Shown here in pieces: positions 2,598-56,262 of a stretch of DNA of 64,000 nucleotides. Position 1 is the stretch's first letter; each line of letters starts with the position of its first letter. The DNA is from Takakia lepidozioides (Eukaryota; Plantae; Bryophyta), in contig CM060733.1 in NCBI GenBank assembly GCA_030704615.1, positions 25,668,001 through 25,732,000 of the forward strand. The letters run 5' to 3'. The notes beneath the pieces are model-generated. The model saw only the letters and a list, made by a program, of their open reading frames with translations, searched no databases and was not told where the DNA came from. The translations under genes were made by a program, and so were the position numbers.

Positions 2598-2609
2598 GCT
2601 CTGATACCA
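2598..2609 (-). promoter_or_regulatory. Primer-binding site (tRNA-iMet) of gypsy element 1
   Basis: Minus strand reads TGGTATCAGAGC, 2 nt after an LTR-type …GCGACA end at 2612. Confidence 0.92.
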
Positions 2610-2611
2610 AG

Positions 2612-10292: not shown

Positions 10293-10466
10293 GGAACCCT
10301 CCTAGAATGGAGACCCAACTCTCACCTCTTGGGCCCAAGAAGTTTTGTATTAAGATAGACTATTTTTGTGCGATCGTGACCGTTGAAGTTGGCCCAAGAC
10401 CAGCCCAAGAGTGGTAGAAATTGGGCCCAGGATTTCTTGGGCTTGGGCCCTAGTGTAAAGCAGCCC
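10293..10466. mobile_element. Partial PIF/Harbinger (Tourist-like) MITE
   Basis: Ends CCCTAGTGTAAAGCAGCCC|TAA, matching the TIR of the complete copy at 40886-41095. Contains internal GCCCAAGA repeats. Confidence 0.7.
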
Positions 10467-27540: not shown

Positions 27541-29586
27541 TTAAGTTGCTATGTGCTGTGAATCCAGCTCGAGAATATACATTGCAGCACGTTCCGCTAG
27601 CGCCAAATCACCATGAAGTCTGCATGCACCAAGAAAGGATCCCCACACTGAAGCGTCTGGTTTGATTGGCATTTTGCTAATGAAGTCTTCTGCCTCAACC
27701 AATTGCCCTGCACGGCCGAAAAGGTCTACCATGCAGGCAAAATGCTCCAATGTAGGTGAGATGCCATTATCTCGAGATATGGACTGAAAGTAGTAATGGC
27801 CTTCATCCAATAGTCCCACATGACTGCAAGCAGATAGAACAGATACAAAGGTGACACTGTCTGGCTTCAAGCCCACCTGTTGCATTTGTTCAAATGATTT
27901 CAGGGCCTCCCGACCATACCCATGCTGAGCATATGCAGCAATCATTGCACTCCATGATACCACATTTCGTTGAGCCATGTTGTCAAACACTTCCCCTGCA
28001 TTCTTTACGCTCCCACATTTGGCATACATGTTAATAAGGGCATTGTCCAAATTAACATATGATGCCATTCCAGCTTTCATGATGTGAGCATGGACCTCTT
28101 TCCCTTTGTCCAAGGCTCCTAGGCTTGCACAGGCATTGAGAACGCAAATGAAAGTGACCATGTCAGGCATCACCCCTTCCCATTGCATGCAATTATAGAT
28201 TTCAAAAGCCTCCCTACTGCACCCATTCTGAGCATATCCTGCAATCATCACACTCCATGAGACCACATTTCGTTTAGCCATACCATCGAACACCTGACGT
28301 GCATCCTTCATGCTCCCACATTTAGCATACATGTCAACAAGGGCATTCTCTAGAATGATATGTGGTGCAATGCCAACTTTCACGATGTCAGCATGGGCCT
28401 CTTTCCCCTTTTCCAGGGCTCCTAGGTTGGCACATGCATTGAGAACGGAAATGAATGTGATCCTGTCAGGTGTCAACCCTTCCTTTTGCATTTGCTCATA
28501 AATCTTGAAAGCCTCCCTGCCACAACCATTCTGAGAATATCCCGTGATCATTGCGTTCCATGAGACTACATCTCGTTTAACCATATTGTTGAACACTTGA
28601 CGTGCATCCGTTATGCTCCCACATTCAGCGTACATGCTAACAAGGCTATTCTCCAAATTAATATATGATGCAATTCCAGCTTTCTTTATGTCAGTGTGGA
28701 CCTCCTTGCCCTTTTCCAGGGCGCCGAGGCTGGCACATGCGTTGAGCACGGAAATGAATGTGACCCTGTTGGGCATCAACCCCTCCCGTTGCATTTGTTC
28801 ATAAATATTGAAAGCCTCCTTGCCACACCCATGCCGAACATATCCTGCGATCATTGCACTCCACGAGATGACATCTCGTTTAGCCATATTTTCAAACACT
28901 TGCTGCGCATCCTTCATGCTCCCACATTTGGCATACATGCCAGCAAGTGCAGTATCCAGAATCATATCTGGCACAATTCCACTCTTGACGATATCGGTAT
29001 GGACTTCTTTCCCCTTTTCAAGTGCTCCCAGGCTGGCACACGCATTGAGAATGCAAATGAATGTAACCCTGTTGGGTGTAAAACCTTCCTGTTGCATTTG
29101 CTCATAGAGATGAAGAGCCTCACAACCACACCCATGCTTGGTATACCCTGCGATCATAATAGCCCATGTAAATAAATCTCGCGCCGGCATTTTATCAAAT
29201 ACTTGGCGTGCATCCACCACACTCCCACACTTGGCATACATTTTGATGAGTGTATTGAAAACTATTACGTCTGGCTTAAATCCGTTTCGGATAATGTGGG
29301 CATGCACCTGTTTTCCCTCTGCTAGCCCATTTGTGTTCATGCATTCCTCCAAGACCGCAGCATATGTATTGGAATCCGGCTGAATGCCCTGTTGGTTCAA
29401 AATGTGCAGCACCTCTTTCAGTCGTCCTTCCTTACATAGTGTCCTTGCATCTCCACACCTGTCAGAAGAGATCTTCCTGACCCACTCTCTCAGTCCTGTC
29501 CCAAACGAAGTGGTGCTGGTGGGGTGGCTACTCCTGCTGGCAATCTGGTGTCCTACAAACAACCTTGTCTGAATAAACCCTGCCAT
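27541..29586 (-). CDS. PLS-class PPR open frame of gene C (17 repeats + E1, truncated)
   Basis: 681-aa ORF with regular 101-aa P-L-S triplets, then P2-L2-S2 (LSACSHVGL…EHFACMVDLFGRAG) and E1 (VWGSFLGACRLHG). Confidence 0.9.
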   Translation of the reverse strand: MAGFIQTRLFVGHQIASRSSHPTSTTSFGTGLREWVRKISSDRCGDARTLCKEGRLKEVLHILNQQGIQPDSNTYAAVLEECMNTNGLAEGKQVHAHIIRNGFKPDVIVFNTLIKMYAKCGSVVDARQVFDKMPARDLFTWAIMIAGYTKHGCGCEALHLYEQMQQEGFTPNRVTFICILNACASLGALEKGKEVHTDIVKSGIVPDMILDTALAGMYAKCGSMKDAQQVFENMAKRDVISWSAMIAGYVRHGCGKEAFNIYEQMQREGLMPNRVTFISVLNACASLGALEKGKEVHTDIKKAGIASYINLENSLVSMYAECGSITDARQVFNNMVKRDVVSWNAMITGYSQNGCGREAFKIYEQMQKEGLTPDRITFISVLNACANLGALEKGKEAHADIVKVGIAPHIILENALVDMYAKCGSMKDARQVFDGMAKRNVVSWSVMIAGYAQNGCSREAFEIYNCMQWEGVMPDMVTFICVLNACASLGALDKGKEVHAHIMKAGMASYVNLDNALINMYAKCGSVKNAGEVFDNMAQRNVVSWSAMIAAYAQHGYGREALKSFEQMQQVGLKPDSVTFVSVLSACSHVGLLDEGHYYFQSISRDNGISPTLEHFACMVDLFGRAGQLVEAEDFISKMPIKPDASVWGSFLGACRLHGDLALAERAAMYILELDSQHIAT

Positions 29587-31112
29587 CCTGAATGACTAAA
29601 CACTCCTAGTTTTGCTTTACTCTCAAACCCACATAATATATCGCTTCCTAATACCTCTTAATTACAACAACTTTCTTGGTCTTATAAAGTATGCAAATCT
29701 TCTTGAAACATCAAACCAGTACCTCTTGTATTCTCTGTCTGGAGCTCAAAGCACCATATTCAGCTGGAACTTGTACCATGGCAACCAATTCCGCTTTCAC
29801 CCACGGAGGTTTTGACAAACTCTCAATCCAAAGGACCTCCTTTGTATCCCTGAAGTCTGCTGATCTTGGACTTTTCTGCGGAAACCATGCCAGTGCAGCT
29901 GAGCAGCCATAGCTCTAACTACAGCCTCATCCAGCCAACCTGAGCTCCACAAGCAACACTTGGCACAGCAGGGCACAACTTTAATCAACCCATGTCATGC
30001 TTTTTCACTGTCAATGGTATGATGGATTTACAACCTGATCCAGCAATAAGGACGACAGTGACAGGTAGGACAGAAAATGATCTTCACTGTCACTAATAGA
30101 GCCGCTGAAACAAAAGCACATGATGATACCAGTTTTACTTGGAAAAAAAATCACGCCCTTTTCCGTCCTATGATCTGGTAATAATAGAGATAGCTTCACC
30201 TTATCGGACCCAATGTCCCACCCTTGCAAGGGATTTGACATGGACTCCAGCCAAAGCCGTTCTAGGCTTGTTGAATGGCCTGCATCCAAACTTCACTAAA
30301 ATAATCAGATCTTCACCGCTTGTAATTGTCTGAGTGTCGTGAGGCATGCTAGTGTAGGCTTCGACTGTGCAAGCCATAGACAACGTTTGCAGGGTACCCT
30401 GAATGAGCACTGTCCCGTATCCACCCCCCAGAGAGACTGGCAATTGCAACATCATAGCAAAATACGTCGTAAGTAGCCTGAACTTAAGGAGCGAGCTCAA
30501 AATTCTTGCACCTCTTGGAATTTGTGGCAGAAATGGATGGGCAATGCAAGATCTCTGTCATCCAAGACTGAGAGGACAACTGGTGGATATTTCTCAAAAC
30601 AGGGTATCCATTATGGGCTATGTTCTCAAGCAAGCGATGCAGATAACTCTACACACAAGGCATGGATACATATACCACTAGAGGCTTTACAGACTTCAGG
30701 CGACACTTAACGAGCTGTTGGAAGGACAAGGGATCGATTACAGTCGCATTCCTTTACAGCCATTGTAGGTCCATAATGTGCACTTCGACGAAAATGGACC
30801 TAGATTCTTTTGGGTTGGGTCAAGCACAATATGGAGCGAGGTACAATCTTTAAAGACCCGAAAAATTGGCAAATGGTTCCAATTCTACACCTTCCTTCGG
30901 TTTCTCTGGAGGCTGGAGAGGCGACATATCCTTCACTTGCAAACTTCCCGGACCAGGCATTGCCAAGCTGAATACCCATTTCCGCTCCAGAGAATGACCT
31001 GCAAATCTGATGCACGATACGAGGCCTCCCGCCCATTCAACGTAATTTGAAGACAGGGACTTAGGTGGGAACTCTCCCAGAGCACGCAGGAGACGCCGGA
31101 GCTCGCTGCCAT
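27541..31112 (-). pseudogene. Gene C: transit peptide-PDF(1)-PLS PPR(17)-E, no DYW; upstream exons damaged
   Basis: Exon 1 30891-31112 (frameshifted relative to gene D exon 1); exon 2 30200-30279 (GHSTSLERLWLESMSNPLQGWDIGSDK); exon 3 29770-29875 (KSPRSADFRDTKEVLWIESLSKPPWVKAELVAMVQ; donor GT>TT); last exon from 29579. A 1-nt insertion at the start of E2 creates the TAA at 27541. Confidence 0.8.
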
Positions 31113-31564
31113 GCCTGTGCATGTGGAAGAGAAGAACTAGAAGAACTAATTACATCCACCATGATCTGTATAGGACAGTGCAAGCTTCGGGTAGTAATTG
31201 AACACCACAGTGAAATAGGCCGAGAGTACGAACTAGGAACCCGATGAGAAGGCAGGAGCGTGTTCTGCTGAGGCTCCAAGAACATGTAACTTAGTCACAG
31301 AGCTCCATAAAAAACCAAAAGGCGGAGCAGGAGTCGGAAAGGGACGTTTATCATAGCTACATAGAAAATTAGGAGACAGGTTGTTCATCCTCTATATCAC
31401 AACGATCTCCATTTTGTAACATGTCTCGGGGCTTGGCAACTGGGATTGAAAGGAAAACCAATGAAGAACTTTGTGGGCTTGATTCTGCTATATTCCCCAT
31501 TTGATCTCGATATTCTCTACTTGTGCAAAATTCTCAAGTTTCTCTTCTTTCTCATTGCACAACG
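31113..31564. promoter_or_regulatory. Putative shared bidirectional promoter of genes C and D
   Basis: 452 bp between the homologous, divergently oriented ATGs at 31112 (-) and 31565 (+). Confidence 0.45.
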
Positions 31565-34500
31565 ATGGCGGGCTCTAGCGTCCATCGCGTGCTCGGGGAG
31601 GCTGTACGCAAGGCCCTGTGTTCTCCTTGCAGTGAGCGGGCAGGGGGTCGCACATCATGCAGGACATTGACGGGCCAAGCTGGGGAGCGGAAATGGGCTT
31701 ACCAATTTGGAAAGGCCTGGCCCGAGGTCTTTGCAAGGGATAGATATGACTGCTATGACGTCCCCCCGCCCTCCAGGAAACCGAAGAAAGGTAGGGGGTT
31801 GTAATTTTTTTGCGTATTTTTGGGTCTTCAACCTGTGTGCGTCGGAGAATGCAGGTCCATTTGTCCTAGAATTTTTTGTTCCATTTTGGAAGAAGTTCAC
31901 TCCTCGTTCTCCTACTTCGATCAGCCTCCTTCAGTTTCACATGGAGTATTGGAAACCTCTGGAATATTTCTCCTCTTTCAATCCATTTCTTGATTATGGG
32001 ATATTCCGTGGAGGGGAAATTCCTGCTTCGTTCTCCCGATGATGAGATGCGGATGGATCGAATAGCCCATCCGAAATCCCCCCAAAATCCAGCTGCAAGT
32101 CCAAGCATTTGAGCTCACTCTTACGGTAGATGTTTGATACATTTTTGTGGTTCCACTGGAGCGGTGCAAAGCCCGAGTTTCCATTCACAATGAGTGATGG
32201 ATAAAGGACAAAGCCAGGTGTACTAATGGGCAAAGCCCTTGCAGAATTTTAAAGGTCCCAGTTGCAGATGCAGATTTCTGTTCACCAGGTTGTGAAACTA
32301 AGCCCAAAGCCACTTAGTGATTGACTGAATGACAATCTGGTTATGCAGAGCACCTCAGTGCTAATCTAGCCCCCCATCTGATGCACATGGCTGTAGTTGT
32401 ACTACCAGTCACACCTACTGTGGTTGAGAAGGAAACAAAATGAAATAAAAGAGACAGATTATGATGACCTCCTCATTGACCTTTCCCTGTGGATGCATGT
32501 TGTATCATAAAGCCTCCTGGAGCCGGTTGTGAGTTTCAGCCCACTAGGGTGCTGAGGGAGAGAGATTAATTTTGTGGAATACAGGCGTATATCAAGAAGA
32601 CAAGTAAGAGCTGCTAAGGATCTTGTCTTTTTAGTGATGTTCGCATGCAGGCCACGCTATGAGCATAAAGCAGCTTTGGAAAAAGGACAACAATTCTGAT
32701 AAGGTCAGACTATCTCCATTGTTACACGGTCATTGTTAAGTCCAAGGGTGGAAAAGACCTTGTTTTTTTCTGAATGTAGTTGGTATGATGGTGCATTTTG
32801 GGATAAATCGCTTTTATGGATTTTGTCTGCCTCACTGCCTCACCTGCGGTAGTTGTTCTTATTGTTGGATCAGTCGATAATTTATCCACAATTGAAGTTC
32901 CTTTATTCAAAGTCTTGCCCTAGTGTATGAAGCGATGCTGGTGGAACTTTGCTGGTTGTAGCCGGGGTCTATTTGAGGCTTTGATTAAAGGTATTGCTGC
33001 TCAGCTGCACGCTGGTGGTTTCCACAGAAAAGTAAAAGTTCAACAGACTTCCGACATGAGCACACGATGAAGGTCCTTTGGATTGAGAGTTGGTCAAACC
33101 CTCCTTGGGCAAAAGCAGAGCTAGCTGCCAGGGCACAAGGTCGAGCACGGTGGGATGATGGATTGGCACCAGAGTACGGCTCTAGTTCTGGTATGACTCT
33201 TGCAACTCCATTGAAGTTTTAAGAAGGCAGTCCAGACTGATGGAATTGCAGATGATGGTCAAACCTGGGCTGGAGAGAGTTAAGAGTATTACCCACAATC
33301 AGCCTGGCTTGAAGGTTAGCTTTTGCCACCACAAGCTCTTGTGCAATATCTGCCAGTTTTGGGATGTCCTTGTAGTATTGAGGCCCAAAAGGAGCTCAGG
33401 GGCAGAAGTTATCAATGCTACAATGACCTTTTCAATAGAGACTTAGGCAGTTGGAAGCTGGCAAAGTTCTTATGCTCTTGGGAGTTCTGGCACACAGGTC
33501 AAGCAATGAGCAGGGAACAGCTGTGGCAAGAGTTCTCGTCAGATCCTCCACAGTCATACATCAGGTCTAATAAGGTGAGACTATCTCATTTAGGACAGAA
33601 AGGAGATTGGGAAGGAGAGTAGTGTATATGATGTTGTTTCATTGATTGCATCTTATCTCCAGTTGCTTAGGTTAGACAATTTTGGTTCTCATATGAGAGA
33701 GCAAGTAAAACCAATTGTTACGGTTGCTATATATAGGCTGTTCAAGGTTTTACCCCATTAATTGGAAGATGCTGGCGCTTCGGTGGTTGAAGTATCTCTA
33801 TTCAGCTGTGCCACAAGGCTACGGTAGACAATGTCTCATGAGTGTATTCTATTTCAGCTGGATAAATTGGTTGGAGATGTCAATGGGTATAAGTGGACGG
33901 GTAAGATGTGTACTCTCAAGGCAGCCTCTGCCAAACGCGGCCAAAAAGGGGTTGGATTCTTTGTCCGCGATTTCTTGTTTGATAATTGTGAAATTATCAA
34001 CAAGGGTTTGAGGTATGAGCACAGTATCTGGCTAAAACTGAATCTGAAGGGCGTGAATACGAAGGACCTCTTTGTGGGTTGTGTATACATGCCCACAGAG
34101 GGGACCCTTAGTGTTGACGCAGACAAAGCCTTCGAAGATGTAAAGCTGGACTGTGCTTCGTTCCTTGCCAAAGGTCAGGTGGTTCTATTGGGTGACTTCA
34201 ATGCCCGGGTGGGCAAAGGTCTCCATCAGGACGATACCATTGGGCCTTTTGGTGAGGACGAGCTGAATTCTAATGGCAGACGGTTAATTAACTGTCTGGA
34301 AGAGCTTCAGCTTTTGACCTTGAATAACAGGACAAGAGGCGACCAAGTGCAGTGGACTCGTGAGAAATCCCAAACTGGGGAACGTTCCATTGTGGACTAT
34401 ATCATAATGGACAAAAATTTGTTTCTCCAGTGTGCCAATGTGTTGATCGACAGAACTGATATTGGTACCTTTGACCACTTCCTGGTTTGGACTGAGATCA

Positions 34501-37500
34501 AAAGCCGTTTCCCAACACCAAGAGATCTGTGAAACGTTCGATTCGGAAGTGGCGCATAGAAAAGTTCCATAATGAGAAGGTCAAGGCTGAGTATGTCCAG
34601 GCCTTGCAAGAGGCTCTCCCCCATTTTGTCCAATCGCTCCAAGAACTTCAGTCTCGCTCTGACAACGCAAGAAATGAAGTCGAAAGAGCAGTGGACTCTT
34701 GGGAGAGTTTCGTTTCCTCCGTGGCTGACAAGATCATAGGGAGGAAACTAATTGTCTGCGGTAGAGCTGTTAATTGGTGGACCAATGAGATTAAACTCAA
34801 GATAGCTGAGGGACGAGCCCTCTATAAAGAGTGCTGCAATTTGAAAACCAACAGAAAATGTGGGCGAGGTACTACCAGCTCCGTAAAGATATCAATCAGC
34901 TTGTTAGGTCTCAGAAGAAATTATACTGGGACAAGTTATACAGATAAACTCAAACCACCATGATGGTAATGACAAGAAATTCTGGTTGACCCTTCAACGT
35001 TTGTACAAGCCGAAAAACGGTCAGCAAGTACAAGCGCTGAAGACTACTAAAGGTGCAGCGGTGACTTCATCGGTTGACATTGTCAAAACCTTTGAAACTC
35101 ACTACAGTATCCTTGGCAGAACTTCTAGGTCTAACAGTGAGGGGTCTTCTGCTGAATGGAGGGACACAGTTGGAAAAACTGTTCCTATGATTCAAAACAG
35201 CCCTGATGAACTGGAGTGTATTTCAATGGCTTATAACGCTCCCATTAGTTCTTCTGAGATTGTGGAAGCAATTGAACATTTAAACGGATATAATGGTGGA
35301 CCTGATGGTATAGTCAACGAGCTTATCAAGCATGGTGGCGATCCCATGATAGAGGCCCTAGTTCTCCTCTTTAACCTTATCTGGAAGACTGAAATGATCC
35401 CCTTTCGCTGGCGACAGGGGGTCATTGTCAATCTATACAAGAAGGGTGACAGAGAAGAGCCGGGGAACTACCGTGGCATCACGCTCCTCAATGCTGTTGG
35501 CAAGACACTCTGCAGAGTTATAAGTACTCATCTCGAGGTTGATCTGGAGTCTAGAGGTTGTTTCCACGAAGGCCAAGCTGGCTTTCAGCGAAACAGGGGC
35601 TGTGTGGATCATATCTTCACTCTAAGCCAGATTATGCAGGGAAGGGAAAAAGAAGGGAAACCCACTTATGTTTTTTTCCTGGATGTCAAAAAGGCTTACG
35701 ACACTTGTGGAGAGATGGCCTATGGTTCCGCCTCTGGTCTTGTGGGATCAAGGGAAAGATGTGGAGAGTTGTCCACAACTTGTATGCTCACACCAAAAGC
35801 TGTGTCACTGTTAACGGACAGAAGGCCAACTTCTTTGACTTAGACCAAGGTGTAGCTCAAGGATGTACTCTCTCCCCTCTGCTCTTCAATGTTTTCATCA
35901 ATCAACTCCTCGAGGATGTGGAAAGTGAGGGATTTGGGTTAAGGGTGGGTGATACCACCATACCAGCCCTTATGTTTGCGAATGACTTCGCAGGCATAGG
36001 GGAGACTCCAACCAATCTCCAGGAGTTGATTGATTGCGCGAAGAGATACTTTGATCTTTGGGGGCTAGAGGCTAATGTCAGCAAATGTGCAGTGGTAGCA
36101 TTCAACGACAGAGGAGAGGGAGGAAGGATCTTAAGTGGCAGTGGGGTAGCCAAGAGATCCCGGTCCTCCCTTCCTACACTTATCTGGGCGTTGAGTTTTC
36201 CTCCAATTGTAATTGGGATGCACATATCCGGAAAGTTGTTCAAACTGGCAAGGGCAAAGCTCTGGGCTCACTAAATTTTTCCACTGCAGAGGGGTCAACT
36301 CTGAGGTTAAGAAAACCATGCTTTGTCGCGTTATTAGACCTGCCTTGGAGTACGGATCTGCAATATAGGTTGATAACTCCAACCAGGCTCTAGAATCCAT
36401 TCAAGTGGGGGTGCTTAAGGAGTGTATGTCAGCATGCTCCAAAACAGCCAATGTGGCTGTTCGGGGTGAGTTTGGCATTCCGTCCTTAAGCTCCCGACGA
36501 GATGAATTCAAGGTCAGATGGTGGGGTCAGCTGCATCTGGTATCTTGGAAACAGGACCGCCCTGTCAAACAGGCTAAGTCCTGGCAGAAGAGAGTAGAAG
36601 AGATTCTCAAGGACCTGGACCTGGAACCGCAAGTCTTGACCCTGCTGGATAAATCTGACTTAGAGGCTGTAGTGTCCAAAGCCATGTCTGTTGCCATGAG
36701 ATTGTCTGATGAAAATGAAGTTAGGCAGAAAACTTCCCTGAACTTGTTTCCAGTCAGTGACATGGGGGAGGATATCTTGGATGACCTCAAGGGTCTACCC
36801 ACTCTCGGCACTAGACTGAAATTTAAACTCAGGGCAGGAAGCCTACCTTTGAACAGCAAACAGAAGCAGAGAGGAAAGGGAGAGTGCAATTGCCCGTTGT
36901 GTGGGCAACCTGAAGACAGTATTCATTTTCTGATACACTGTCCGGGGTTCTCTCACCAAAGAGACGCTCTCTTCAAATCTATCAAGGGAATTGTGCCTGT
37001 ACCTCTGTTTACCAACTTTGAAAGTCTCGAGGCTGAGCCAAAAGCCCAGGCCCTCCTGAGGCCTAGTTTTTGGGCAAATCACACACAGCAGATTGATGCT
37101 TGTGTGAAGGGATTTCTAGAGGATATCTGGAAAACCCGGATTAATTCTATATATGAAGGTGGTCTTACTACCAACGTCAGCCCCCGACAGAGGTAGGTTC
37201 TGCCCCTTTTGTTTCCGCTCAAACTGGGCGCGGGGTCAATGGCCACAAGGCTACGGCAAACAACGTCTTATGAGTACAATCTATTTCAGCTGGGCAATTG
37301 TGGTTTTTGCAGAGAAGCCCAAGATCACTAGATGTAAGACAGGAGTGCCAAAAGGAGAGCCTTTGTATTAAGAATTCGTCAAACCCATGGGTAAAAGCAG
37401 AGCTAGCTTTCATGATACAAGGTCGAGGAGGACGTCATGGAGCTCCAGCGCAAGAAGACAATGGGTATTGCTATGATGATTCAAGAGTCTCAAGTCAAAA

Positions 37501-39829
37501 AAATGGAATTGGTACAGTATTCTCAAAGTAAATGCAGTAGTTTTGGAACCCCCGTTGATATGTAGCAAAGGACTGTACTAATGGAAGCTACTTGTTTTAA
37601 GCATCTAGGAACTTAAAGATGGAATATGTGAGTTTGACTACAAATATTTGTAACAAATTTTTGTCCTGCATGATGGCAGGGTTTTGTCAGGCACGGTCAT
37701 TTGTTGGACATCAAACTGGGTGCACAGGTAGCACATTGACCATCTCCACTAGTTTTAAAGAAGGATATAGAGAGGAAGTCAACAAGAATTGTTCTGGCAC
37801 TTGTGGGGATGTGAGGATACTGTGCAAAACAGGACGCCTGAAAGAGGCACTCTTCATTTTAAACCAACCTGGCCTTTCGACAGACTACAATACTTATGTC
37901 TGTATCTTGCAAGAGTGCATCAACACAAAAGGCCTGGAAGAGGGGAAGCAAGTTCACACCCACATGATCCGTAGTGGATTCAAGCCAAACTTCTTCCTCC
38001 TTAACACCCTTATCAACATGTATGCCAAGTGTGGGAGCATGGTGGATGCACGCCATGTCTTCGATACGATGCCTGGAAGGACTCTGTTTACATGGACTAT
38101 AATGATTGGAGCATATGCCAAGCGTGGGTGTGGTAGGGAGGCTTTCAATCTCTATGAGCAAATGCAACGGGAAGGGTTGACACCTGACAGTGTCACATTC
38201 ACTTGTGTTGTCAATGCATGTGGGAGCATAGGAGCTCTGGAAAAGGGAAAAGAGGTCCATGCAGACATCATTAAAGCTGGAATTGTGCCAGATATCATCC
38301 TAAGGAATACCCTTGTTGACATGTATGCCAAATGCGGGAGCATGAAGGATGCACATCTAGTGCTAGACAGTATGGTTAAACGAGATGTGGTCTCATGGAG
38401 TGTGATGATCACAGGATATGCGCAGGATGGATGTGGTAAGGAAGCTTTCAAGATCTATGAGCAAATGAAACGAGAGGGGGTGATGCCCAACAGAGTTACA
38501 TTCACTGTTGTACTCAATGTATGTGCAAACTTAGGAGCCCTGAACAAGGGCAAGGGTGTTCACGCTGACATCATCGAAGCTGGGATTGCATCTGATATTA
38601 TTTTGGAGACTGCCCTTGCTGACATGTATGCCAAATGTGGGAGCATGAATGATGCACGTAAAGTGTTCAACAATATGGCTGAACGAGATGTGATCTCATG
38701 GAGTGCAATGATCGCAAGATACGCCCAGCATGGGTGCGGCAGGGAGGCTTTTGAAATCTATGAACAAATGCGATGGGAAGGGGTGATGCCCAACAGAATC
38801 ACGTTCATTTCCATTCTCAATGCATGTGCCAGCATAGGAGCCCTGGACAAGGGAAAAGAGGTCCATGCTGAAATAGTCAAAGCTGGAATTGTCCCAGATG
38901 TCAATTTGGGAAATACCCTTGTCGACATGTATGCCAAGTGTGGGAGCATGAAGGATGCTCGTCAAGTGTTGGACAGCATGGCTAAGCGAGATGTTGTCTC
39001 ATGGAGTGCAATGATTGCAGGATATGCTTGGCATGGGTGTGGTAGGGAGGCTTTTGAGATCTATGAGCAAATGCAATTGGAAGGGGTCACACCTGACAGG
39101 ATCACATTCATTTGCATTCTCAATGCATGTGCCAGCTTAGGATCCCTGGACAAGGGCAAAGAGGTCCATGCTGACATCATGAAAGCTGGAATGGCGTCAT
39201 ATATTAAGTTAGAGAATTCCCTTGTTAACATGTATGCCAAATGTGGGAGTGTAAAGGATGCAGGTCGAGTGTTCGAACACATGGTTGAACGAGATGTGGT
39301 CTCATGGACTGCCATGATTGCCGGATATGCTCAGCATGGGTGTGGAAGGGAGGCCCTGCAACTATTTGAACAAATGCTACAGGACGGGTTGAAGCCAGAC
39401 AGTATCATGTTTATGTCTGTTCTCTCTGCATGTAGCCATCTCGGACTAGTGGATGAAGGCCGTCACTACTTCGATTCTATGAGCCGAGATCATGACCTTG
39501 CTCCTACACTGGAGCATTTTGGCTGCATAGTAGATGTCCTCAGCCGTTCAGGGCAATTGGATGAGGCAGAGGAGTTCATTAGCAAAATGCCAATCAAACC
39601 AGATGCGTTGGTGTGGGGCGCGTTGCTTAGTGCCTCCAGAGTTCAAGGCAATGTGGAGGTAGCAGAACGTGCTGCAAATTGCCTCCTCAAGTCCTATCCA
39701 CTGCCACTGCAACTCATTTCCTCCAATCAAACAGGGTGGGGCAATAAAGCAACTGCACCTCTTTTCCACCGGCCTTGGATGCAAGGGAGTTTATATTGCG
39801 CCGGATTGCTGAGCATTGGCACCGCGTAG
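31565..39829 (+). CDS. Gene D: transit peptide-PDF(2, divergent)-PLS PPR(17)-E1, lacking E2/DYW; 6-exon open model of 908 aa
   Basis: Exons 31565-31790, 32651-32703, 33028-33139, 33498-33574, 37313-37421, 37680-39829. All introns GT-AG, phases 1,0,1,0,1; 2727 nt in total with no internal stop. PDF halves: IKQLWKKDNNSDK^KSKSSTDFRHEHTMKVLWIESWSNPPWAKAEL and REQLWQEFSSDPPQSYIRSNK^RSPRSLDVRQECQKESLCIKNSSNPWVKAEL. Confidence 0.8.
33861..37264 (+). mobile_element. Non-LTR retrotransposon (APE-RT-CCHC; RTE/RTEX-like by inference), 5'-truncated and frameshifted, in intron 4 of gene D
   Basis: Endonuclease (VGCVYMP, LGDFNARVG, SIVDYI, DHFLVW), RT (NYRGITLL, QAGF…DHIF, LDVKKAYD, GVAQGCTLSPLLF, FAND for FADD, YLGVEF), C-terminal CPLC…HFLIHC. 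Confidence 0.93.
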
Positions 39830-41095: not shown

Positions 41096-42524
41096 TAAGA
41101 TTCGGTGGGCTATGCACGCTTCAAATGTGGCGCCAAAGGTGGCATGTGGGTTTCTAGAGTCTACACTGTTGGATGTTCACATGGAGGACTGGTAATGGGC
41201 TGCGTGTAAGTAGGGAAGTGGCGGAGATTGAAAGGAATTGGAAACAAAAAAGCTGTAATCTTTTGCGTTATGCAGCCCAATTTGTTTGGAAGCGGAGCGA
41301 TCTGAGAGTCTCCAATCTAGGGAGAATTTGTAGCTTGCTGCTTGCAATAGACACGGATGCTGGAGATTGATCTCATTCTTGAAAGTTCACTCATGGCCAA
41401 AATGCTGTTGGAGGGCGACCCAGTTAGCTAATGCAGCAATGGACTCCAGATACAGGGCCCTTGATTCTGGGATTCTATTAGAAGTCGGATATGGTCGCTG
41501 GGGCTTTGTGTGGGCAGGGAGCGGGTGGGTACATTGACCCATGAGCTCTACGTGTTTCAACCATGGTGTTGCTGCTAGCAACCAAAGTCACTGACCTGGA
41601 TGGGTAATGGCAGACTGAGCTCTACACCGACGGCACAGGATGACAAACTGTAGTCCTCGAGCCTATGAAAATTTGAGGCTGTGTGGCGAATGCTATTTTA
41701 TGACGTGCACAGGGGAAGCACTACGATGCAAGGGTGAGGAGATGAAAACAAGAATCCTCCCACTATGACACCAAATCTCTCCCACCAAGGTTTTTCTGTA
41801 GAGGGCCTGTATTCTCTCAGGTGACCTCCGTTCCACTCTTGTAAACGTTTCTCCTCCCCCCTCTTTCCTGGTGATTTATGGATGTCTTCGTTTCTTGTCT
41901 TATTTCATCTCTCAGGCAGCACTTTTCATGAAGTTTTCTTCCTCTGTCGTGTTTCCTGGGAAGCCCTTGCCTTGATAGCTGGCTTATGGACTTGATTTGA
42001 GGAAAGTTATGTAACTGCGTTATGTATCTACGTTACCTCCCAAAACATCGACTCTCTGAAGCAATTCCATTTGGGGATTTTTCTGTCCTTCCTCCTTCCC
42101 CGACTGAAGCTTTCTCATGCCCCAATACTTACTTTGACCTGCACCTGGCTTTCACGCGCACATGACTGTGGACCACAAAATCCTTTTTCTTGTCTGGTCG
42201 CTGCAGATTAAATTCATGGCTAGAGCTGCAGTATGGAATTCAACTATGCATTCAATGGTGCCCGATGTCAGCTGTCCAATGATTTTCTCCTGTAAACATC
42301 TCCTCTTTCCTATGATCCTGAGCAATAAACTGCAACCCATTTTCCCTTTGGTTATCCATAATGTGAAAGATGGAAGCAAGGTAGGCAGGTTCATCAATAG
42401 GTCTGCTGTAGGGGCTTCATCTTGCATTTTGTTGCTGTGAGCCCAGACACCAGCCACAGTGCAGCCAGGTTAAACTGGCACACAACACCTGGTTAAGTTC
42501 AGGTAGATCCATAACAAGGGCCAT

Positions 42525-45500
42525 GTGCTCACAACTCTCTCACATCCAGCCACTCTGACATACAATTTGGCTGTTGGTAGGAATGGCAATGTGGTGGCTG
42601 GCGTGGTTGATGAAGTGGACCCTATTGAAGAATTCAGTTCCCAACGCACTGTATCAACAGAGCTCTATCTTCCCCCCACCCAAAACCCGGGCTTGTCTTT
42701 CAAGTTGGCACCCAGAGACAGTACTAGTTGTGCTGGTTCTGAAAATCAGCAGTGTTGCAGACAATCACGCACTGTAGTGGCCTCAGTTCCTTTATTGTCA
42801 CCTTCACAGGAGGTATCTCTTGACTCTCCTGGGAGATTTCCAGTTGATGGGGGCACTGTAAAAACCTCCAGTGGACGGGGAGAAGTCGAAGGGGTGTTTT
42901 CACATGGAGGCCAAGAGAGAATATCATGTTCTGGATACACCCGAAAGAGTAGCAAGAGGAGGAAAGTGGGCAACACCCAGCTGGGATCTGCTGATGTGGC
43001 AGCAGCAGTTGGTTTGACTGTAACAGCTGCAGAAGCAATGGTACTTGCTGGCATATTGGCAGAATGCACTTCAGGCAGCAACCTTTCACCCTCCATGATC
43101 CTGGAGGCAACCATACAGTTGCGACGGGCACGCCAGATGTGGGGATTAGACGATTATGATGTTGGTTCAACCAGTGTTAGTGGTGCTCATGAAGAGGTGC
43201 TGCGTGTAAACAATTCGGGGGACATTCAAGCTGCAGCAGATGATGAGCCATTGAAGGCCCTTGATGATGTGGAGATGCAGGAGGCTATGGCTGATGTGGG
43301 TTTCATAGAAGCATCAGGTAAGTTTCACACCACTTATTGCATGGTGATTTTGGTGTGGGTGGACATCTGTAGAATTCCTTCAAAGAATGTAACACTTTCT
43401 AATACCTTGCAAAACTCCAAGTGAGTGTTTTCTGGTTGGACAATCCTACAGCTCACAGATGGGGGAGCCCTCACTGTTTTCCCACTGTCTTCTGGAAAGT
43501 CTTGTCCAGTTTCAGTTGGAATAAGGGCTCTTTATTTACTAATATTGCACACTGGACGGGCAGGTATGGTGAGGAAGCCAGGAGTGAAGTAGTGGCAGTG
43601 CAGATTAGGTCTGAAGGTCCATGTATTACAGCTCATTTTCATCTGAGAAACTGCTTACTTGATTGCTGAATCAGCTGCAGAGCCAGGGCACCTTGAGGAG
43701 GTCCACCTACCTGGATATGACGATGTACATAGCCAAGAAGGTTGGAGGCCAGACCTACCATGCAACCGAGCGAGACCTTACAGGGATGAGACACGGACCA
43801 ACACTCTTGATGTGTTAATTCCCAATACCAAATACGTTTGTGAGAGAGACAGAACACACTCTCGAGACAGGAAATCCTTGAGGAAAGAAGAGCACTCCAT
43901 TTCAAAGGATATTTTGTCAGAGAAGGAGATTGGTACCGCTCCTTTGTGGAAATATGGTGGATGTGTGGATTCTGCATTGAGGCCAGACAAAATGCAATGG
44001 CAGGAATCGGACAGTAGACCAAACCTCGCCGTGGCAAAGGAAAAACTCAATGAAGAAGTGCCTAAGAGCTCTGAGAGGAATGAAAGAGTAGATGCTGCCT
44101 TCAACTCCACCGCAGGCAAAAAGCAGGACTTAGGGCTTTCTCTGGCCGTGGAAAATTCCAGAGTGGAGCTGTCTGCTTTGACTCCAACTATGGGGGATAA
44201 CTGCAAAAGGCCTTTCCCTTCAGCGGATCTTACCTCACCTCCTGTAGTATCAGGGGTGGCCATTTGCCATTCACAGGGGCACGGACCCTTACAAGTTGTG
44301 GGTAGACAATCTGAGCGTCATACGGGTCATGGTGACTTGACTGTTAGAGTGGACCATGTTGATGCCATCATTCACAAGTCTCAAGAGGATTTATTCCAAG
44401 ATGGCATGGTTAGCTGCCTTACGTATCTTGCTCTCCTTGATGTGCACATTTCTTAACCCCTCTGTCATCTCATTATCTATGCATTTACTACACTGCTTCT
44501 TCGTTATATCCGGCAAGTTTTGCATTGTCTTAATTGATATACTTCATAATCTATTCCTTACAAGATTGTCTTCTATAATAGGTATGTGTTGTTATATGAA
44601 ATATGCTAATATCCTCTTGTTGCTGCAGGCAGGCAAGGAGATGAATGGGAGACCCTGCTCCTCAGTGGAACCTATTAAAGACTTAGAGTGCCCTACGGTC
44701 CAATGTGAGCAGAGTAGAGGAAAACTTTTGACAAAAAGTGCAGTTGCAGAGCATGCAGAAAGAGCTTGCATAATTCCCAAGGATCTTGTTCCCACTTCTC
44801 TATGCAGTGAGGAGAAAAATACTGGACATGCAAAACTTTCATTGTTAGAAACAGGGGGAACCAGAAATCCAGTGAAATTGCCAGAATCAAAAGTCACCAT
44901 CAGGGTACCTGCTTGTGTTCATGAGGACATCCACGAAGAAAATTTTCAGCTGCACTGCTCAGGGCAGCAAGGCAGCACCGCTGTTGTCACTATGACTTCC
45001 AAACCATCTGGGGAGGGCTCAGGCTCACCTATAAAACTTTTCAGTAGCCGGTGGTATGGAGGGTGGACTGGCCTTGTAAGATCTCAAACTAGGTTCTCCC
45101 CATGTGCATGTTTTCTGTTTGGTCCTCTAGGTTTTGCAAATGTGTACCTCATGTAATGGGGCATGTGGATTGGTTCCCACCAGTTGTGGTTTGATAATGT
45201 CAAGACACAGCTGCATGGCATTACCAGCACTAGTCATGGGTATGTGATGAAGTCTGCTGTTTACCTAGCAATGCGTTCTTATCTTCTGCAGGGACATGTA
45301 TTGCCCAATAAGGTTAGAGGGACCACAGAGACCTCGAGTGATGCACCCGAAGCAGAAGTGGATATGCATTATTTGCCCGAGCCCTGGGATATTGGCACTG
45401 AAGATGCCATGCCTGAACGGGCAACAGCCTTGACCTGCCTTAGAAGCAAACAACAGGACTACCAGACAATCACCACCACGTGCTTTACAGTGCCAGCCAT

Positions 45501-48500
45501 AAAGGAACTGCTGTGTCCCTCTGAGGCCCCAGTATCTCTGGGGGAAGACCAGGTTGAGTGTGTCCCCTTGGGAACTGCCCGTGTCCAGGAACAAGCAAGC
45601 AGAAAGGCAGGAATTGTGCCTCAAGGATCTCATTTGGGTTCTGTGGCATTTTCTTCCCATGCAGATCCCCTCTGTTCATTTGTTCCCTGCAGCATCTCTG
45701 TGCCAGATGCGTCTTGCCTGCCAGCCCACATAAACAGTCAAAGTGATTTGAGCTTGGTTGCTAGGGTCAAGGCCATGAGTCTGGCTGTTGGTGGTATAGG
45801 AAACAATGGCATCCAAGCCATCTCAGTAAGGAACAGGTGTGCAGCAGAAATGCTCAACTTGGTTTTCCCATCTGGGTGTATGGGAGAGACCAAGGAGACT
45901 CAGGAGCATTTGCATGAGAGAGACCATGGTGGGGGGAAGCTTGCGCCTGATTCTGTGAAGCGGACCCATGTAGCTTCGCTGAGGCCATACAGCACCTGTG
46001 CAACAGCATCTGCAAGCGCTCTTGGATTGCGACTCCATTCCGTAGAGTTAACTGCAAAAATGCACGGCAACAGAGGAAAGTTTTTGGAAACTCCTCATGT
46101 GCCAAGGCTTGCAACAAGCAGAGGAAACGATGCCCTGCAGAGTGAGGAGCAACTCTTGGCCAACAAGTCTGCAAACTTCATTTCTTCTGGGTGTGTGCTT
46201 GCAGATGAGGATATCTCATCGCCTCTTAACCTGGAGGCTCCGGCGGGAACACCTGTTCCCGTTGAAACGGTACCCGGTGTCAATCAGGAAGGTGCTACAA
46301 GAATGCATGGTAAAGTTTGTGGCCCAGAGAAGCAGTGTTTGCCTCACCCAAGTTCATCAGAGTATATCAGCCAATCAGAGTCTCCCCCTCTCTTATGGCC
46401 AAATGGGAGGAAACGCCGACTTAGAGCTTGTAGGATTGTGGAAACTGGCAGCGATTACCACCCTGATGAAGGTCAGTGCATTTCTTATGGGTTCCGGTGT
46501 ACTAGATAAGTGTCACCGTGTTCAATCCCTGTCACTTCCAGATAAACATGTAGTTATTGACTATTGCCAGGAGGGCAGAGTGTTTTGGGTGGCAAGGACA
46601 TTGTGGGCCTCAATGGATTGTCCCATGCAAGACATCCTCTTTTACCCACCTAGTACCAGTTGTCTAGTGGAGACCAACATTTCTATTCCATGCCCTTGAT
46701 AGGTTTCTGTTTCATGTGTGTTTTTGAAGGTGATAACAGCTTTGAAAATACAACGTTGGTGATGCAGGGGAAACTCCATGCAGCTGTCCTATTTCTCCCA
46801 TGATAGATGCCACGAGATTGACGGGCAATCAAGGTGTGAATGAGAGTGGATCGGTTGCCACAGAAGAGTTACAGCACATTCATCTCAAGAAGGTTGCAGC
46901 CACAGGAGATGTCAATATTGCAGATGAAGTAGTGAAATCATTTGCTCCAAAACAACCCCAGAAGAGCAACGGGGGTGCAAAAGATAGAGCATCTCTTTTG
47001 AAAAGACCCAAAGGTATTACTTACACAGCCCAAAAAAGATTCTTGAGACAGGTTTTTCTGAGTTGGGCTCTGGACAAGGCAAATGTGACACTCTGTGGTC
47101 AGGCATTGCTTTGGCTGCAGTCAGGGCATTGGCTGATGTGAATCCATTTGGTCATGTGGACTTTACCTGGTAGTGATGTTGCCTGCAGTGCATTGTGTTG
47201 TTTTATGCTAGTATTCATTCAGATCTCAGAAGGATCTTGCAATGTACTCTATTGGAGTTTGAGGGTGACTTCTGATTTTTTATTGTAAGCAGAACATCTT
47301 CTTTGTTTTGTCAGTTTTCGAATTTAATTGCATTTGGCTGCCTCCCCTCATTACTTCTTCTCGACAGCATTGGATGGTGTTTAGCACTTAATGATGTGCA
47401 GGCCTCCAGAAAACTTAGGTTACCACACTGGACTGTCCTCCGTTTCATCCCTCAAATGTCTACATTTTCTGAAGGCACTGCTTGACACAGCTCAACCACA
47501 TCAACCTTCCTTGCATCCGTGCAAAGGTTGCCAAGTTTATTATGCTGTCCTTGACGAGTCATGATAGATCTCATCTTTTGAACAGACGCAGCCTTCTCCA
47601 TTCTGCTATGACCATCTGCTCTCAAGCTATATCTCTTTTTTTACTGTTTTTCAGTGAATCCCAATCCAATCAGTCTAACAATGAGACAACCTACATCTTC
47701 TGTTGGCAGCAGCTAAGGAGACTACAAGCCGAAATGAGCCAAAGGTCGGGAGTAAAAAGCCCTCAAAAAAGACCGGGAGAAAGGAAGCCACAGCAGTAAG
47801 AGAGGCCATCGGCATCAAGAACAAATCCATTCCAAATGGGCAACAGGAACAAGGTCTACTGTTTGGAGGCCTACGGTTTTTACTAACTGGCTTTTCACTC
47901 AAAAAGAAGGATGACCTGATCAAGACTATAAAAGAGAATGGGGGTGTTGTCCTTCTGAATGTGCCAGCAAGAAAATTGAGGGGAAATGGCAGGGAAAAGC
48001 AAGGACCACCAATTGTAATCTCCCCTCAGCTGGTTAGTTTCATCATGAGCACCTGACTTCTAATTTGGGATGGCTATCTTTTCCATTTTCGTCAAATCCA
48101 ACTCTACTGGAAAAGCGTAGAACCACTTTTGAATTTCGTTTGGACATAGAAAAGTAAATGGGGCTTTTTGTGGTCTTGGTTCACTTTGGCAACTTTCTGC
48201 AGGTTCGTACACACAAGTTTTTGTACGGATGCGCTGTTGCCTCCCCTCTTATAAAGCCCGCATGGATAAATGCTTCAATAGCTGCGCACGAGCCATTACT
48301 CTTTGCCAAGTAAAGAAGTTCCTCAGACCTTTGCTTTTTTGGCTACTGATGTGCTTGAATATAAATATGCCATGTGGTTAAGTTGGCAGGAACTTTTGAT
48401 TTTGAATGGCTGGCCTGCAGTAACTGTTTATGTACTCTTTCTCCAAATTGTGGTATTTTGTGTTCAGATATGAGCACAAGCCTAAGAAGAGGGTTAAATC

Positions 48501-53877: not shown

Positions 53878-56262
53878 TTACTTGAGGACATATTTTGCAG
53901 CACGTTCTGCAATCTCCACATTCCCATGGATATTGCAGGCACCAAGCAAGGCTCTCCACACCACAGCATCTGGTCCAGCTGGCATTTTGTTAATGAGGTC
54001 CTCTGCCTCGTGTAAATGTCCAGCGCGACCAAGAAGGTCCACCATGCAGCCAAAATGCTCCCATGTAGGAGTGAGGCCATGATCTCGAGTCAAGGAATCC
54101 CAGTAGTGTCTGCCTTCATCCACTAGGCCCCCATGGCTACATGCGGAGAGAACACATACAAAAGTTATACCATTTGGCTTGAACCCTTTCTGTTGCATCT
54201 GTTTAAATAAACCCAAGGCTTTCCTACCACATCCATGCTGGGCATATCCTGCGATCATTGCATTCCATGAGACTACATCTCGCTGAGGCATATTGTCAAA
54301 TACCTGATTTGCATCATGTATGTTCCCACATTTGCAATACATGTCAACCAGGGCGTTCTCCAGAATGGTATCTGGAACAATTCCAGTTTTTATGATGTCA
54401 GCATGAACCTTTTTACCCTTCTCCAGGGCTGCCAGGCTAGCACAAGCATTCAAAATGCAGACGAACGTGACGTGGTCAGGTGTCACCCCTTCCTGCATCA
54501 TTTGCTCGTACATCTCCAAAGCCTCCCTACCACACCCATGATGGGCATACCCGGAGATCATCGCGTTCCATGAGACCACATTTCGTTGACCCATATTGTC
54601 AAACACTCGACTTGCACCATTCATGTTCCCGCATTTGGCATACATGTCCACCAGGGTGGTGTCCAGAATGATATCTGGTACAATTTCAGCTCTCATAATG
54701 TCAACATGGACCTCTTTGCCCTTCTCCAGGGCTGCCAGGCTGGCACAAGCCTTAAGAATGCAAACAAATGTGATATGGTTGGGTGGCATCCTTTCCTGTG
54801 TCATTTGCTGATAGATTTCCAAAGCCTGCGTTCCATACCCATGCTGAGCATAACCTGCAATCATCGTATTCCATGAAACCACATTTCGTTGACCCATATT
54901 GTCAAAAACTTGACGTGCATCCTTTATGTTCCCACATTTAGCATACATGTCTACCAGTGCCGTGTTGAGAATGGTATCTGGTACAATTCCAGCTTTCATG
55001 ATGTCAGCATGAACCTCTGCGCCCTTCTCCAGGGCTGTCATGCTGGCACAAGCCTTGAGAACGCAAACAAATGTGACGTGGTTGGGTGTCACCCTTTCGT
55101 GTATCATTTGCTCATAGGTTTCCAGAGCCTCCCTACCACACCCATGCTGGGCATATCCTGAAATCATCGCATTCCATGAGACCACATCTCGTTCAGCCAT
55201 TTTGTGAAACACTCGATTTGCATCATTTATACTCCCGCATTTGGCATACATGTCAACCAGAGTATTTTCGAGACTGATATCTGGCAGAATTCCAGCTTTG
55301 ATGATGTCAGCATGGATCTCTTTGCCCTTCTCCAAGGCTGCCAGGCTGACACATGCCTTGAGGACACAAAGGAATGTGACCTGGTTGGATGTCATCCCTT
55401 CCCGTATCATTTGCTCATAGGTCTCCAAAGCCTCCCTACCACACCCATGCTGGGCGTATCCTGTGATCATTGCATTCCATGAAACCACATTTCGTTGAGC
55501 CATATTGAGAAACACTCCATTTGCATCATTTATGCTCCCGCATTTGGCATACATATCCACCAGGGCAGTCTCAACAGTGATATCTGGAACAAGTCCAGAT
55601 TTCATGACATCAGCATGGACCTCCTTGCCCTCCTGGAGGGCTGCCAAGCTGGCACAAGCCTTGAGAACACAAACGAAGGTGATGTGATTGGGAATCATCC
55701 CTTCCTGAATCATTTGTTCATAAGTCTCCAAAGCCTGCCTACCACACCCACGCTTGGCATATCCTGCCACCATAATATTCCATGTGGACAAATCTCGTAC
55801 ATGCATTTTGTCAAACACAAGGCGTGCATCTTCAATGCTCCCACACTTGGCATGCATGTTGATGAGGGTGTTGAGTAGAAAGATCTTCGGCTTGAATCCA
55901 TTTTGGATCATGTGGGCATGCACCTGCTTTCCCTCCACTAGGCCTTTCACTTTGATGCACTCCTGCAAAAGACACACATATGTACTGGAGTCTGCCAAGA
56001 TGCCCCCTTGGTTCAAAATTTGCAATGCATCTTTCAATCGTCCTGTCTTACACAGTGTCCTCACATCCCCACAGGTGCCAGAAGAGTTCTTATGGGCTTT
56101 CTTTCTTGGTCCTCTTTCTGAAGTAGTCGAAGCCCCTGATCCAAGCAGCCCTGTGGCCCCTGCTTTCAGTTGACCAGCTACCAGTTTAGGTTTCTTCTCA
56201 GAAACAATCCGCAGTGCCTTGTTGGTACTCTTCTTCTTGTAATCTGTTCCCCTGGGAAGAAT
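53878..56262 (-). CDS. Open PLS-PPR tract of gene B (20 repeats + E1)
   Basis: Part of the 830-aa ORF (whose listed start is a TTG inside an intron). Regular PLS triplets, P2-L2-S2, E1 VWRALLGACNIHG, then a premature stop. Confidence 0.85.
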   Translation of the reverse strand: MLPRGTDYKKKSTNKALRIVSEKKPKLVAGQLKAGATGLLGSGASTTSERGPRKKAHKNSSGTCGDVRTLCKTGRLKDALQILNQGGILADSSTYVCLLQECIKVKGLVEGKQVHAHMIQNGFKPKIFLLNTLINMHAKCGSIEDARLVFDKMHVRDLSTWNIMVAGYAKRGCGRQALETYEQMIQEGMIPNHITFVCVLKACASLAALQEGKEVHADVMKSGLVPDITVETALVDMYAKCGSINDANGVFLNMAQRNVVSWNAMITGYAQHGCGREALETYEQMIREGMTSNQVTFLCVLKACVSLAALEKGKEIHADIIKAGILPDISLENTLVDMYAKCGSINDANRVFHKMAERDVVSWNAMISGYAQHGCGREALETYEQMIHERVTPNHVTFVCVLKACASMTALEKGAEVHADIMKAGIVPDTILNTALVDMYAKCGNIKDARQVFDNMGQRNVVSWNTMIAGYAQHGYGTQALEIYQQMTQERMPPNHITFVCILKACASLAALEKGKEVHVDIMRAEIVPDIILDTTLVDMYAKCGNMNGASRVFDNMGQRNVVSWNAMISGYAHHGCGREALEMYEQMMQEGVTPDHVTFVCILNACASLAALEKGKKVHADIIKTGIVPDTILENALVDMYCKCGNIHDANQVFDNMPQRDVVSWNAMIAGYAQHGCGRKALGLFKQMQQKGFKPNGITFVCVLSACSHGGLVDEGRHYWDSLTRDHGLTPTWEHFGCMVDLLGRAGHLHEAEDLINKMPAGPDAVVWRALLGACNIHGNVEIAERAAKYVLK

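Follow-up and report, generated by a model that had tools for sequence, protein, structure and literature searches.

Exon Structure of Gene D

A 64,000-nucleotide stretch of Takakia lepidozioides DNA (GenBank assembly GCA_030704615.1, contig CM060733.1, positions 25,668,001 to 25,732,000; hereafter the window, with positions counted from its first letter) represents a plant nuclear region that harbors a cluster of PLS-class PPR genes. The present analysis concerns one of them, gene D, located at 31565–39829 on the forward strand, which combines upstream exons related to the PDF motif of OSB proteins with a large PPR exon and carries a 3.4-kb retrotransposon in its fourth intron (Table 1). The first-pass annotation of the window had proposed six exons with GT-AG sites, intron phases of 1, 0, 1, 0, and 1, and 2727 nt without an internal stop. 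This model was reproduced exactly when the frames were checked exon by exon with the split codons treated apart. The coding sequence recomputed from the DNA comprised 2727 nt, i.e., 908 codons and a TAG, with no internal stop codon, and its start is the first ATG of the open reading frame (ORF) 31523–31804. All internal borders are of the type AG|...|GT and the ten splice dinucleotides are intact; the five donors all read AAG|GT (AAG|GTAGGG in exon 1), and the three split codons (GGC, GGT, and GGG) each encode glycine. The first 40 residues encoded by exon 1 contain six Arg or Lys, two Asp or Glu, and eight Ser or Thr. This makeup is compatible with an organelle targeting peptide, and the "TP" of the first-pass annotation is a guess from composition.

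Read-through from exon 5 into intron 5 meets a stop codon at 37529–37531, and in-frame ATGs of the PPR frame are present at 37619, 37670, and 37673, just 5′ of the exon 6 acceptor. All cassette borders are of phase 1; exons 4 and 5 can therefore be skipped in frame, and a direct junction of exon 3, or even exon 1, with exon 6 would likewise be in frame and recreate the same G|GG codon.

Table 1. Positions of gene D, its intronic retrotransposon and the related gene copies in the window.
Feature	Position	Strand	Description
Gene D exon 1	31565–31790	+	226 nt = 75 codons + 1 nt; start codon, presumed targeting peptide; phase 1
Gene D exon 2	32651–32703	+	53 nt; PDF motif 1, first half, shortened (..IKQLW..SDK)
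Gene D exon 3	33028–33139	+	112 nt; PDF motif 1, second half (KSKSS-TDFRHE..VLWIESWSNPPWAKAEL)
Gene D exon 4	33498–33574	+	77 nt; PDF motif 2, first half (REQLWQEFSSDPPQ..)
Gene D exon 5	37313–37421	+	109 nt; PDF motif 2, second half, degenerate (RSPRS-LDVRQE..SLCIKNSSNPWVKAEL)
Gene D intron 5	37422–37679	+	258 nt; in-frame ATGs of the PPR frame near its 3′ end
Gene D exon 6	37680–39829	+	2150 nt; linker, PLS-type PPR array, start of E1 motif, 45 unrelated codons, TAG
Repeat, upstream copy	33810–33861	+	52-nt imperfect direct repeat; 7 mismatches to downstream copy
LINE	~33862–37241	+	3380 nt; decayed non-LTR retrotransposon on the sense strand of gene D; APE, RT, C-terminal CCHC-like motif
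Repeat, downstream copy	37242–37293	+	52-nt imperfect direct repeat; ends 19 nt before exon 5
Gene C	27541–31122	-	Head-to-head paralogue of gene D; comparator
Gene C exon 1	to 30891	-	
Gene C first-half exon	30279–30200	-	80 nt, AG/GT
Gene C second-half exon	29875–29770	-	
Gene C PPR ORF	29586–27541	-	
Gene G	53.9–57.4 kb	-	Stops in E2/DYW
Gene H	59.1–63.8 kb	-	Intact 1029-aa PPR-DYW ORF
Fifth PDF-PPR copy	7.7–10.4 kb (7700–10355)	+	Fragmented; scattered PPR pieces in several frames

PDF-PPR Genes in Seed-Free Land Plants and Their Exon Borders

The PDF motif is a ∼50-residue module, and the PDF motif of AtOSB1 alone binds single-stranded DNA (PMC6963530). Homology searches were carried out exon by exon. 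In a protein search with the PPR ORF of gene D alone as the query, 31 of the best 120 matches were found to have a WWDNR...PDFKHK signature N-terminal of the PPR array, in one to three copies of W..F.DP.QWWDNR....PDFKHK...LW...P.WV. The sources of the 31 proteins were lycophyte, liverwort, and environmental, namely, Diphasiastrum complanatum, Calypogeia fissa, and the JGI, ENA, and Logan entries. The PDF region of one family member (P0014, residues 20–250) matched proteins named OSB1, OSB2, and OSB3, down to E = 1e-36, along with Marchantia and Riccia proteins having an SSB OB-fold domain; many short PDF-PPR fragments from Sphagnum were also among its matches. The same region also matched Trinity-named transcript ORFs (P0186, P0196, and P0198) that run unbroken from a Met through a Ser-rich leader and a full PDF motif into the first PPR motifs. 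Short contigs with uninterrupted PDF-PPR ORFs were found as well, from samples that may or may not be RNA, and they were not counted as transcript proof. A reading of "PDF" as peptide deformylase was considered and rejected, as the canonical WWDNR/PDFKHK pieces in the neighboring genes and the named OSB proteins match the OSB motif. No paper found by the literature search linked the PDF motif with PPR proteins.

The exon borders of gene D were compared with those of two family members, Diphasiastrum complanatum O6H91_11G109000 (P0060, locus L001) and Calypogeia fissa P0042 (locus L002). In both, the PDF cassette has phases of 1, 0, and 1; two bases of a Gly codon open the 80-nt first-half exon, which reaches the conserved Trp 9 residues further on and closes after ..K, and the second half starts 5 residues before P-D-F. 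Exons 2, 3, 4, and 5 of gene D sit on exactly these borders, and exon 4 begins at this Gly codon, 9 residues ahead of the Trp, as in the two family members. Less fixed is the intron that separates the last PDF half from the PPR exon: P0042 and the neighboring genes G and H lack it, and that of P0060 lies 9 codons later than in gene D. Genes C and D share this last intron, with the acceptor ATGGCAG|GGTTT.

It had been claimed at first pass that the PDF exons and the PPR exon belong to one gene, and the comparison bears this out: their order, borders, and phases match those of annotated lycophyte and liverwort PDF-PPR genes, and exons 3 and 6 are conserved above the level of the intron between genes D and C (see below). 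The sequence data support the view that the PDF exons and the PPR exon of gene D are parts of one inherited gene. They also indicate that a fusion family, with OSB-type PDF modules placed before a PLS-class PPR array, is real in seed-free land plants.

Identity of the PDF Modules

Two profile hidden Markov models (HMMs) of the PDF motif were run on the six-frame pieces of the window, one built from 32 motifs of other species (lycophyte-motif HMM) and the other from 36 motifs of true OSB proteins only (OSB-only HMM). Exon 3 was recognized by both, at E = 3e-13 and 6e-8, respectively. The corresponding values were 5.6e-4 and 0.008 for exon 5 and 9e-4 and 0.25 for exon 4. Exon 2 alone was not recognized, giving E = 7.7 with the lycophyte-motif HMM and no match with the OSB-only HMM. 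Pfam has no PDF-motif model, and the small-exon pieces of gene D gave no Pfam match; the SSB/OB-fold domain (PF00436) was not found by Pfam in exon 1 or the rest of the gene D model. The "PDF-PDF" arrangement of the first-pass annotation is therefore upheld in part: exon 3 is a solid PDF half, exons 4 and 5 are weak, and exon 2 is not recognizable alone. As judged from these profiles, OSB-type PDF homology holds for the second half of motif 1 and is marginal for motif 2.

The identity of exon 2 comes from its counterpart in gene C, to which it is orthologous, with a common GCCA start, GATAAG|GT end, and intron start. As the gene C exon measures 80 nt, exon 2 is shorter by an in-frame 27 nt, in agreement with the earlier annotation; the 9 missing codons include the FxDP..WWDNR part. 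Exon 4 is one codon below the canonical 80 nt and has lost WWDNR, and comparison with the columns of the reference motifs did not find a WWDNR block in either exon 2 or exon 4. A piece just 5′ of exon 3 (32924–32990, KRCWWNFAG..) was also considered as a first-half exon and rejected; its phases do not fit and the HMM was silent.

The failure of the HMMs to recognize exon 2 by itself, and the ease with which short exons stay open (single short exons of gene D are open by chance at 0.2–0.5 each), could be taken to mean that the small upstream exons are fortuitous open GT/AG stretches and the gene model a product of chance. This is nearly excluded. Exons 3, 4, and 5 are each significant against an HMM from other species, their borders fall on the same residues and in the same phases as in the lycophyte and liverwort genes, and exon 2 shares both ends with its gene C ortholog. 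The joint chance for five random open stretches of such lengths is 3.6e-4 at the window stop-codon frequency of 0.0405. Homology at the exact exon borders is a stronger argument for the gene model than this chance-of-openness figure.

PPR Array and Loss of the 3′ End

Exon 6 matched the Pfam models PPR_2 (7e-98, six stretches) and PPR (2.5e-94, nine stretches). The array extends from ∼37805 to 39691 and consists of about five 101-residue triplets and a terminal P2-L2-S2; the tandem P, L, and S motifs place gene D in the PLS class of PPR proteins. Homology to every paralogue ends at 39692, inside the E1 motif (..AANCLLK), and no remnant of E2 or DYW was found downstream of this position in any frame by HMM or tblastn. 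The earlier statement that gene D lacks DYW is thus confirmed, and gene D, having neither E2 nor DYW, cannot be an autonomous cytidine deaminase or editor. Two candidate DYW remnants downstream (tblastn, 41640–41705, E = 0.28; HMM, 41619–41765, E = 4.9) had no further DYW features and were regarded as noise.

Within the array, the PLS triplets in 38003–39441 showed 76–77% DNA identity to each other with a 303-nt period, about the level seen between gene D and its paralogues, suggesting that triplets have been duplicated or converted inside the gene D array. In gene G (minus strand), a stop codon at 53878–53880 and a 5-codon insertion follow the same ..LK codon at which gene D homology ends, as if the E1/E2 border were a site of recurrent breakage.

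Selection on the PPR Array and on Exon 3

Genes D and C were compared with blastn and MAFFT, as lax-gap global alignments were uninformative (shuffled controls reached 0.64–0.72). Intron 2 measures 324 nt in both genes and is collinear at 59% identity. Exon 3 (79% identity, p = 9e-5) and exon 6 (78%, p = 5e-13) stand above this level, and exon 2 (72%) and exon 1 (∼66%) only marginally so. The D–C indels in exon 2 (27 nt) and exon 3 (6 nt) are both in frame.

For the PPR part, the D–C comparison gave a dN of 0.18, a dS of 0.64, and an omega of 0.28. When genes G and H were used as outgroups, 44 nonsynonymous (N) and 49 synonymous (S) single-step changes were assigned to the own branch of gene D (omega ∼0.25) and 53 N and 55 S to that of gene C (omega ∼0.26). 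Exon 3 against the second-half exon of gene C gave a dN of 0.175, a dS of 0.72, and an omega of 0.24 over 35 codons, with 13 N and 10 S differences; the small-exon tests rest on 17–37 codons. The PPR array and exon 3 have evolved under purifying selection since the D–C split. The retention of exon 3 as coding sequence under the regime of the PPR array is a stronger argument for "one gene" than an open frame by itself.

Non-LTR Retrotransposon in Intron 4

The 3.4-kb LINE reported inside gene D is present, with APE and RT domains and a 3380-nt body on the sense strand. It lies in intron 4 (33575–37312) and matched the Pfam models Exo_endo_phos_2 (PF14529, 5e-07) and RVT_1 (PF00078, 6e-09 and 3e-14, in two different frames). 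The endonuclease profile match starts at position 65, which implies 5′ truncation, and the chain of ORFs runs through frames 0, 2, 0, 2, 1, and 0, i.e., at least five frame breaks. The element resembles APE/RT non-LTR retrotransposons in the order of APE and RVT_1, the CCHC-like motif after the RT, and the 5′ truncation; it differs from them in its frame breaks, in the 52-nt flanking repeat, and in that no poly(A) tail was found on the intron 4 copy.

The two 52-nt repeats differ by 13.5%. The first ∼24 nt of the repeat (GCCACAAGGCTACGG.A.ACAA) match the 3′ end of another LINE copy (16962–16987), and the repeat does not look like a plain target-site duplication; a conserved 3′ recognition element, or the stub of an older tail, could account for the common ∼24-nt stretch. 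This second copy (16962–17398, minus strand) is otherwise 75% similar, yet identical in 26 of 26 bases at its 3′ end. Without the LINE body and one repeat, intron 4 would measure ∼306 nt, and the paralogous intron 2 measures 324 nt in D and C. The last 19–47 nt before exon 5 lie outside the LINE, and the acceptor context of exon 5 is accordingly unchanged. The first 13 nt of the intra-cassette intron (GTNAGACTATCTC) are alike in introns 2 (32704–32716) and 4 (33575–33587) of gene D and in intron 2 of gene C (30199–30187, minus strand); beyond them, the three introns are ∼59% identical or unalignable.

Other PDF-PPR Copies and Surroundings

Gene D was said to be the only copy in the window still able to make the full fusion, and this holds: genes C, G, and H carry lesions and the copy at 7.7–10.4 kb is fragmented. 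In gene C, a TT donor follows the second-half exon, exon 1 is frameshifted, and a stop is present in the E region. In gene H, a stop replaces the first Trp of WWDNR in the PPR-proximal first-half exon (62192–62245, minus strand; ..YVSNPS*WFDKGRK). The fifth copy contains canonical PDFKHK pieces at 8286–8330 and 8388–8492. In gene G, the distal PDF cassette (57447–57364 and 56919–56803) is a canonical one.

Genes C and D form an old head-to-head inverted duplication (30850–31831) whose axis lies near 31338. With only ∼440 bp between the starts of their first exons, the two genes may share a bidirectional promoter. Elsewhere in the window, pieces of a Ty3/gypsy-type long terminal repeat retrotransposon were detected at 420–7406 (minus strand), with gag, zinc knuckle, and aspartic protease matches in Pfam and a 677-aa ORF resembling reverse transcriptase by sequence. 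Just 3′ of gene D, at 42525–46509 (plus strand), four long ORFs (299, 265, 266, and 448 aa) gave no Pfam match.

Is Gene D a Functional Gene?

Exons 1–6 very probably are, or were, one transcription unit. On balance, gene D is judged somewhat more likely than not to be a still working or barely working gene of the PDF-PPR family. An open frame is no proof of a 908-aa protein; that this form is the main product today is somewhat unlikely, and an isoform joining exon 3 to exon 6, or a start at the ATGs beside exon 6, would fit the sequence equally well.

A number of observations weigh against a functional fusion. The closest protein to the PPR ORF in the collection searched is only 53% identical, the best identities of about 50% being to a lycophyte. 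In the reference PDF motifs, 17 columns reach a conservation of 85% or more (W F W D R K / P D F K H K L W P W V); 8 of these are retained in PDF-1 (exons 2 and 3) and 7 in PDF-2 (exons 4 and 5); in the second halves alone, 7/11 are kept in exon 3 and 5/11 in exon 5. The P-D-F signature reads TDF in exon 3 and LDV in exon 5, where LW is also replaced by LC. The divergence of the PDF motifs described in the first-pass annotation is evident in these figures and in the loss of WWDNR. At the 3′ end, only positions 1–61 of a 235-column E/DYW HMM were matched, and the unrelated codons (39692–39826) lead to the TAG. That annotation had also pointed to dN/dS on the PDF exons, and constraint was borne out for exon 3 against paralogue C and not for exon 5, which is neutral-like against exon 3 (dN 0.39, dS 0.31; 26.5 N and 5.5 S differences). 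From these rates, cassette 2 may be dispensable; the contrast between the exon 5–exon 3 and exon 3–gene C comparisons is suggestive and not significant (Fisher p = 0.07). Furthermore, an intronic LINE on the sense strand can cause premature termination of transcripts.

Taken together with the visible decay of the other four copies in the window, the lost E2 and DYW with an unrelated tail, the degenerate PDF hallmark residues, the neutral-like exon 5, and the absence of a close protein would suit a young pseudogene, i.e., a locus that died recently, for example with the loss of E2-DYW at 39692 or the arrival of the LINE, and whose frame is open for lack of time. This is regarded as unlikely, if the most serious of the alternatives. 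The omega of 0.25 on the own branch of gene D speaks against it, as do the ten intact splice dinucleotides, and the 13.5% divergence of the 52-nt repeats suggests an old insertion. The LINE also serves as a clock: its five breaks in 3380 nt predict 4.0 in the 2727 nt of the coding sequence, and none was seen (P = 0.018). For exon 6 alone, 3.2 breaks are predicted (P = 0.042). For exons 1–5 alone, the test has no power (P(0) = 0.43), and the openness of the upstream exons is no proof of recent constraint, a further point to be set against the fusion.

A second alternative is a stand-alone PPR exon in the C/D lineage, transcribed from its own start near 37.6 kb and translated from the ATGs at 37670/37673 (29586 in gene C), with a Ser/Thr-rich targeting stretch after them and exons 1–5 as relics, open by chance. 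The in-frame ATG right before the acceptor is conserved in genes C and D, and the gene C PPR ORF starts at this ATG of the shared acceptor context; yet ATGGCAG|G also makes a good acceptor in its own right. Of the first 30 residues encoded from 37670 on, none is acidic, two are basic, and nine are Ser or Thr, but in relatives this stretch forms an internal linker behind the PDF motif. A further argument comes from gene C: its PPR ORF is under constraint (omega 0.26) despite the lost donor and the frameshift in exon 1, so that the PPR exon may not need the upstream exons; the sense LINE upstream of the PPR exon points the same way. Against this, conservation between C and D is as high in exon 3 as in the PPR exon, far above the adjoining intron, and the upstream splice sites and frames of gene D are all intact. 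A stand-alone PPR exon is considered improbable, more so than the pseudogene, and a gene that still includes its PDF exons is preferred.

A Proposed Model and Relation to Known Systems

In the preferred reading, the inherited layout of gene D would have been a targeting exon, cassette 1, cassette 2, and the PPR exon, each PDF module being a two-exon cassette with a ∼80-nt first half and a ∼110-nt second half in phases 1-0-1. The LINE would have inserted later into the intron inside cassette 2, leaving the splice sites unchanged. In its present state, gene D has six open exons but no longer carries the hallmark residues of its two PDF motifs, 9 of the exon 2 codons, or anything past the middle of the E1 motif. 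If gene D is transcribed from the 440-bp head-to-head region common to C and D, the mRNA may hold both cassettes (908 aa) or skip exons 4 and 5 in frame. The product would presumably be an organelle-targeted PPR protein with sequence-specific RNA binding, for which deamination would need another protein, and its PDF modules would probably bind single strands weakly or not at all.

Seed-plant E-class PPR proteins recruit a DYW enzyme in trans. By analogy, gene D might be a working bryophyte recognition factor without a deaminase of its own that recruits a DYW enzyme in trans, with alternatively included PDF cassettes giving one- or two-module isoforms; this idea is speculative and has a low probability.

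Gene D resembles the PLS-class PPR-E/DYW organellar RNA editing factors in its P/L/S array with ∼101-residue triplets, P2-L2-S2, and the start of E1. Its closest relatives end in E2-DYW, whereas gene D ends inside E1, and it has N-terminal PDF modules that are unmentioned in the published PPR descriptions searched. Its PDF modules are of the two-part type W..F..DP..WWDNR / PDFKHK..LW..P.WV of OSB proteins, exon 3 matching the OSB-only HMM; however, WWDNR and the P-D-F signature are lost, true OSB matches carry PF00436, and the modules of gene D stand before a PPR array rather than behind an OB fold. The nearest likeness is to the PDF-PPR(-DYW) genes of lycophytes, liverworts, and mosses, with their N-terminal exon, one to three PDF cassettes, linker, and PLS array. 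Gene D differs from these in its eroded motifs, first halves of 53 and 77 nt, missing DYW, and the LINE in a cassette intron.

Much is known of PPR editing factors and of OSB proteins, but the joined family is absent from the papers found, though its sequences are widespread in lycophytes, liverworts, and mosses. The phase-symmetric two-exon cassette would let PDF modules be gained, lost, or skipped without a frame break. Gene D is not the best representative of the family, yet it is informative: the retention of exon 3 under PPR-like selection after duplication speaks, at the level of sequence, for a functional fusion and against an annotation artifact. As a natural variant with eroded PDF modules and no deaminase, gene D could, by comparison with its canonical neighbors, reveal the role of the PDF module.

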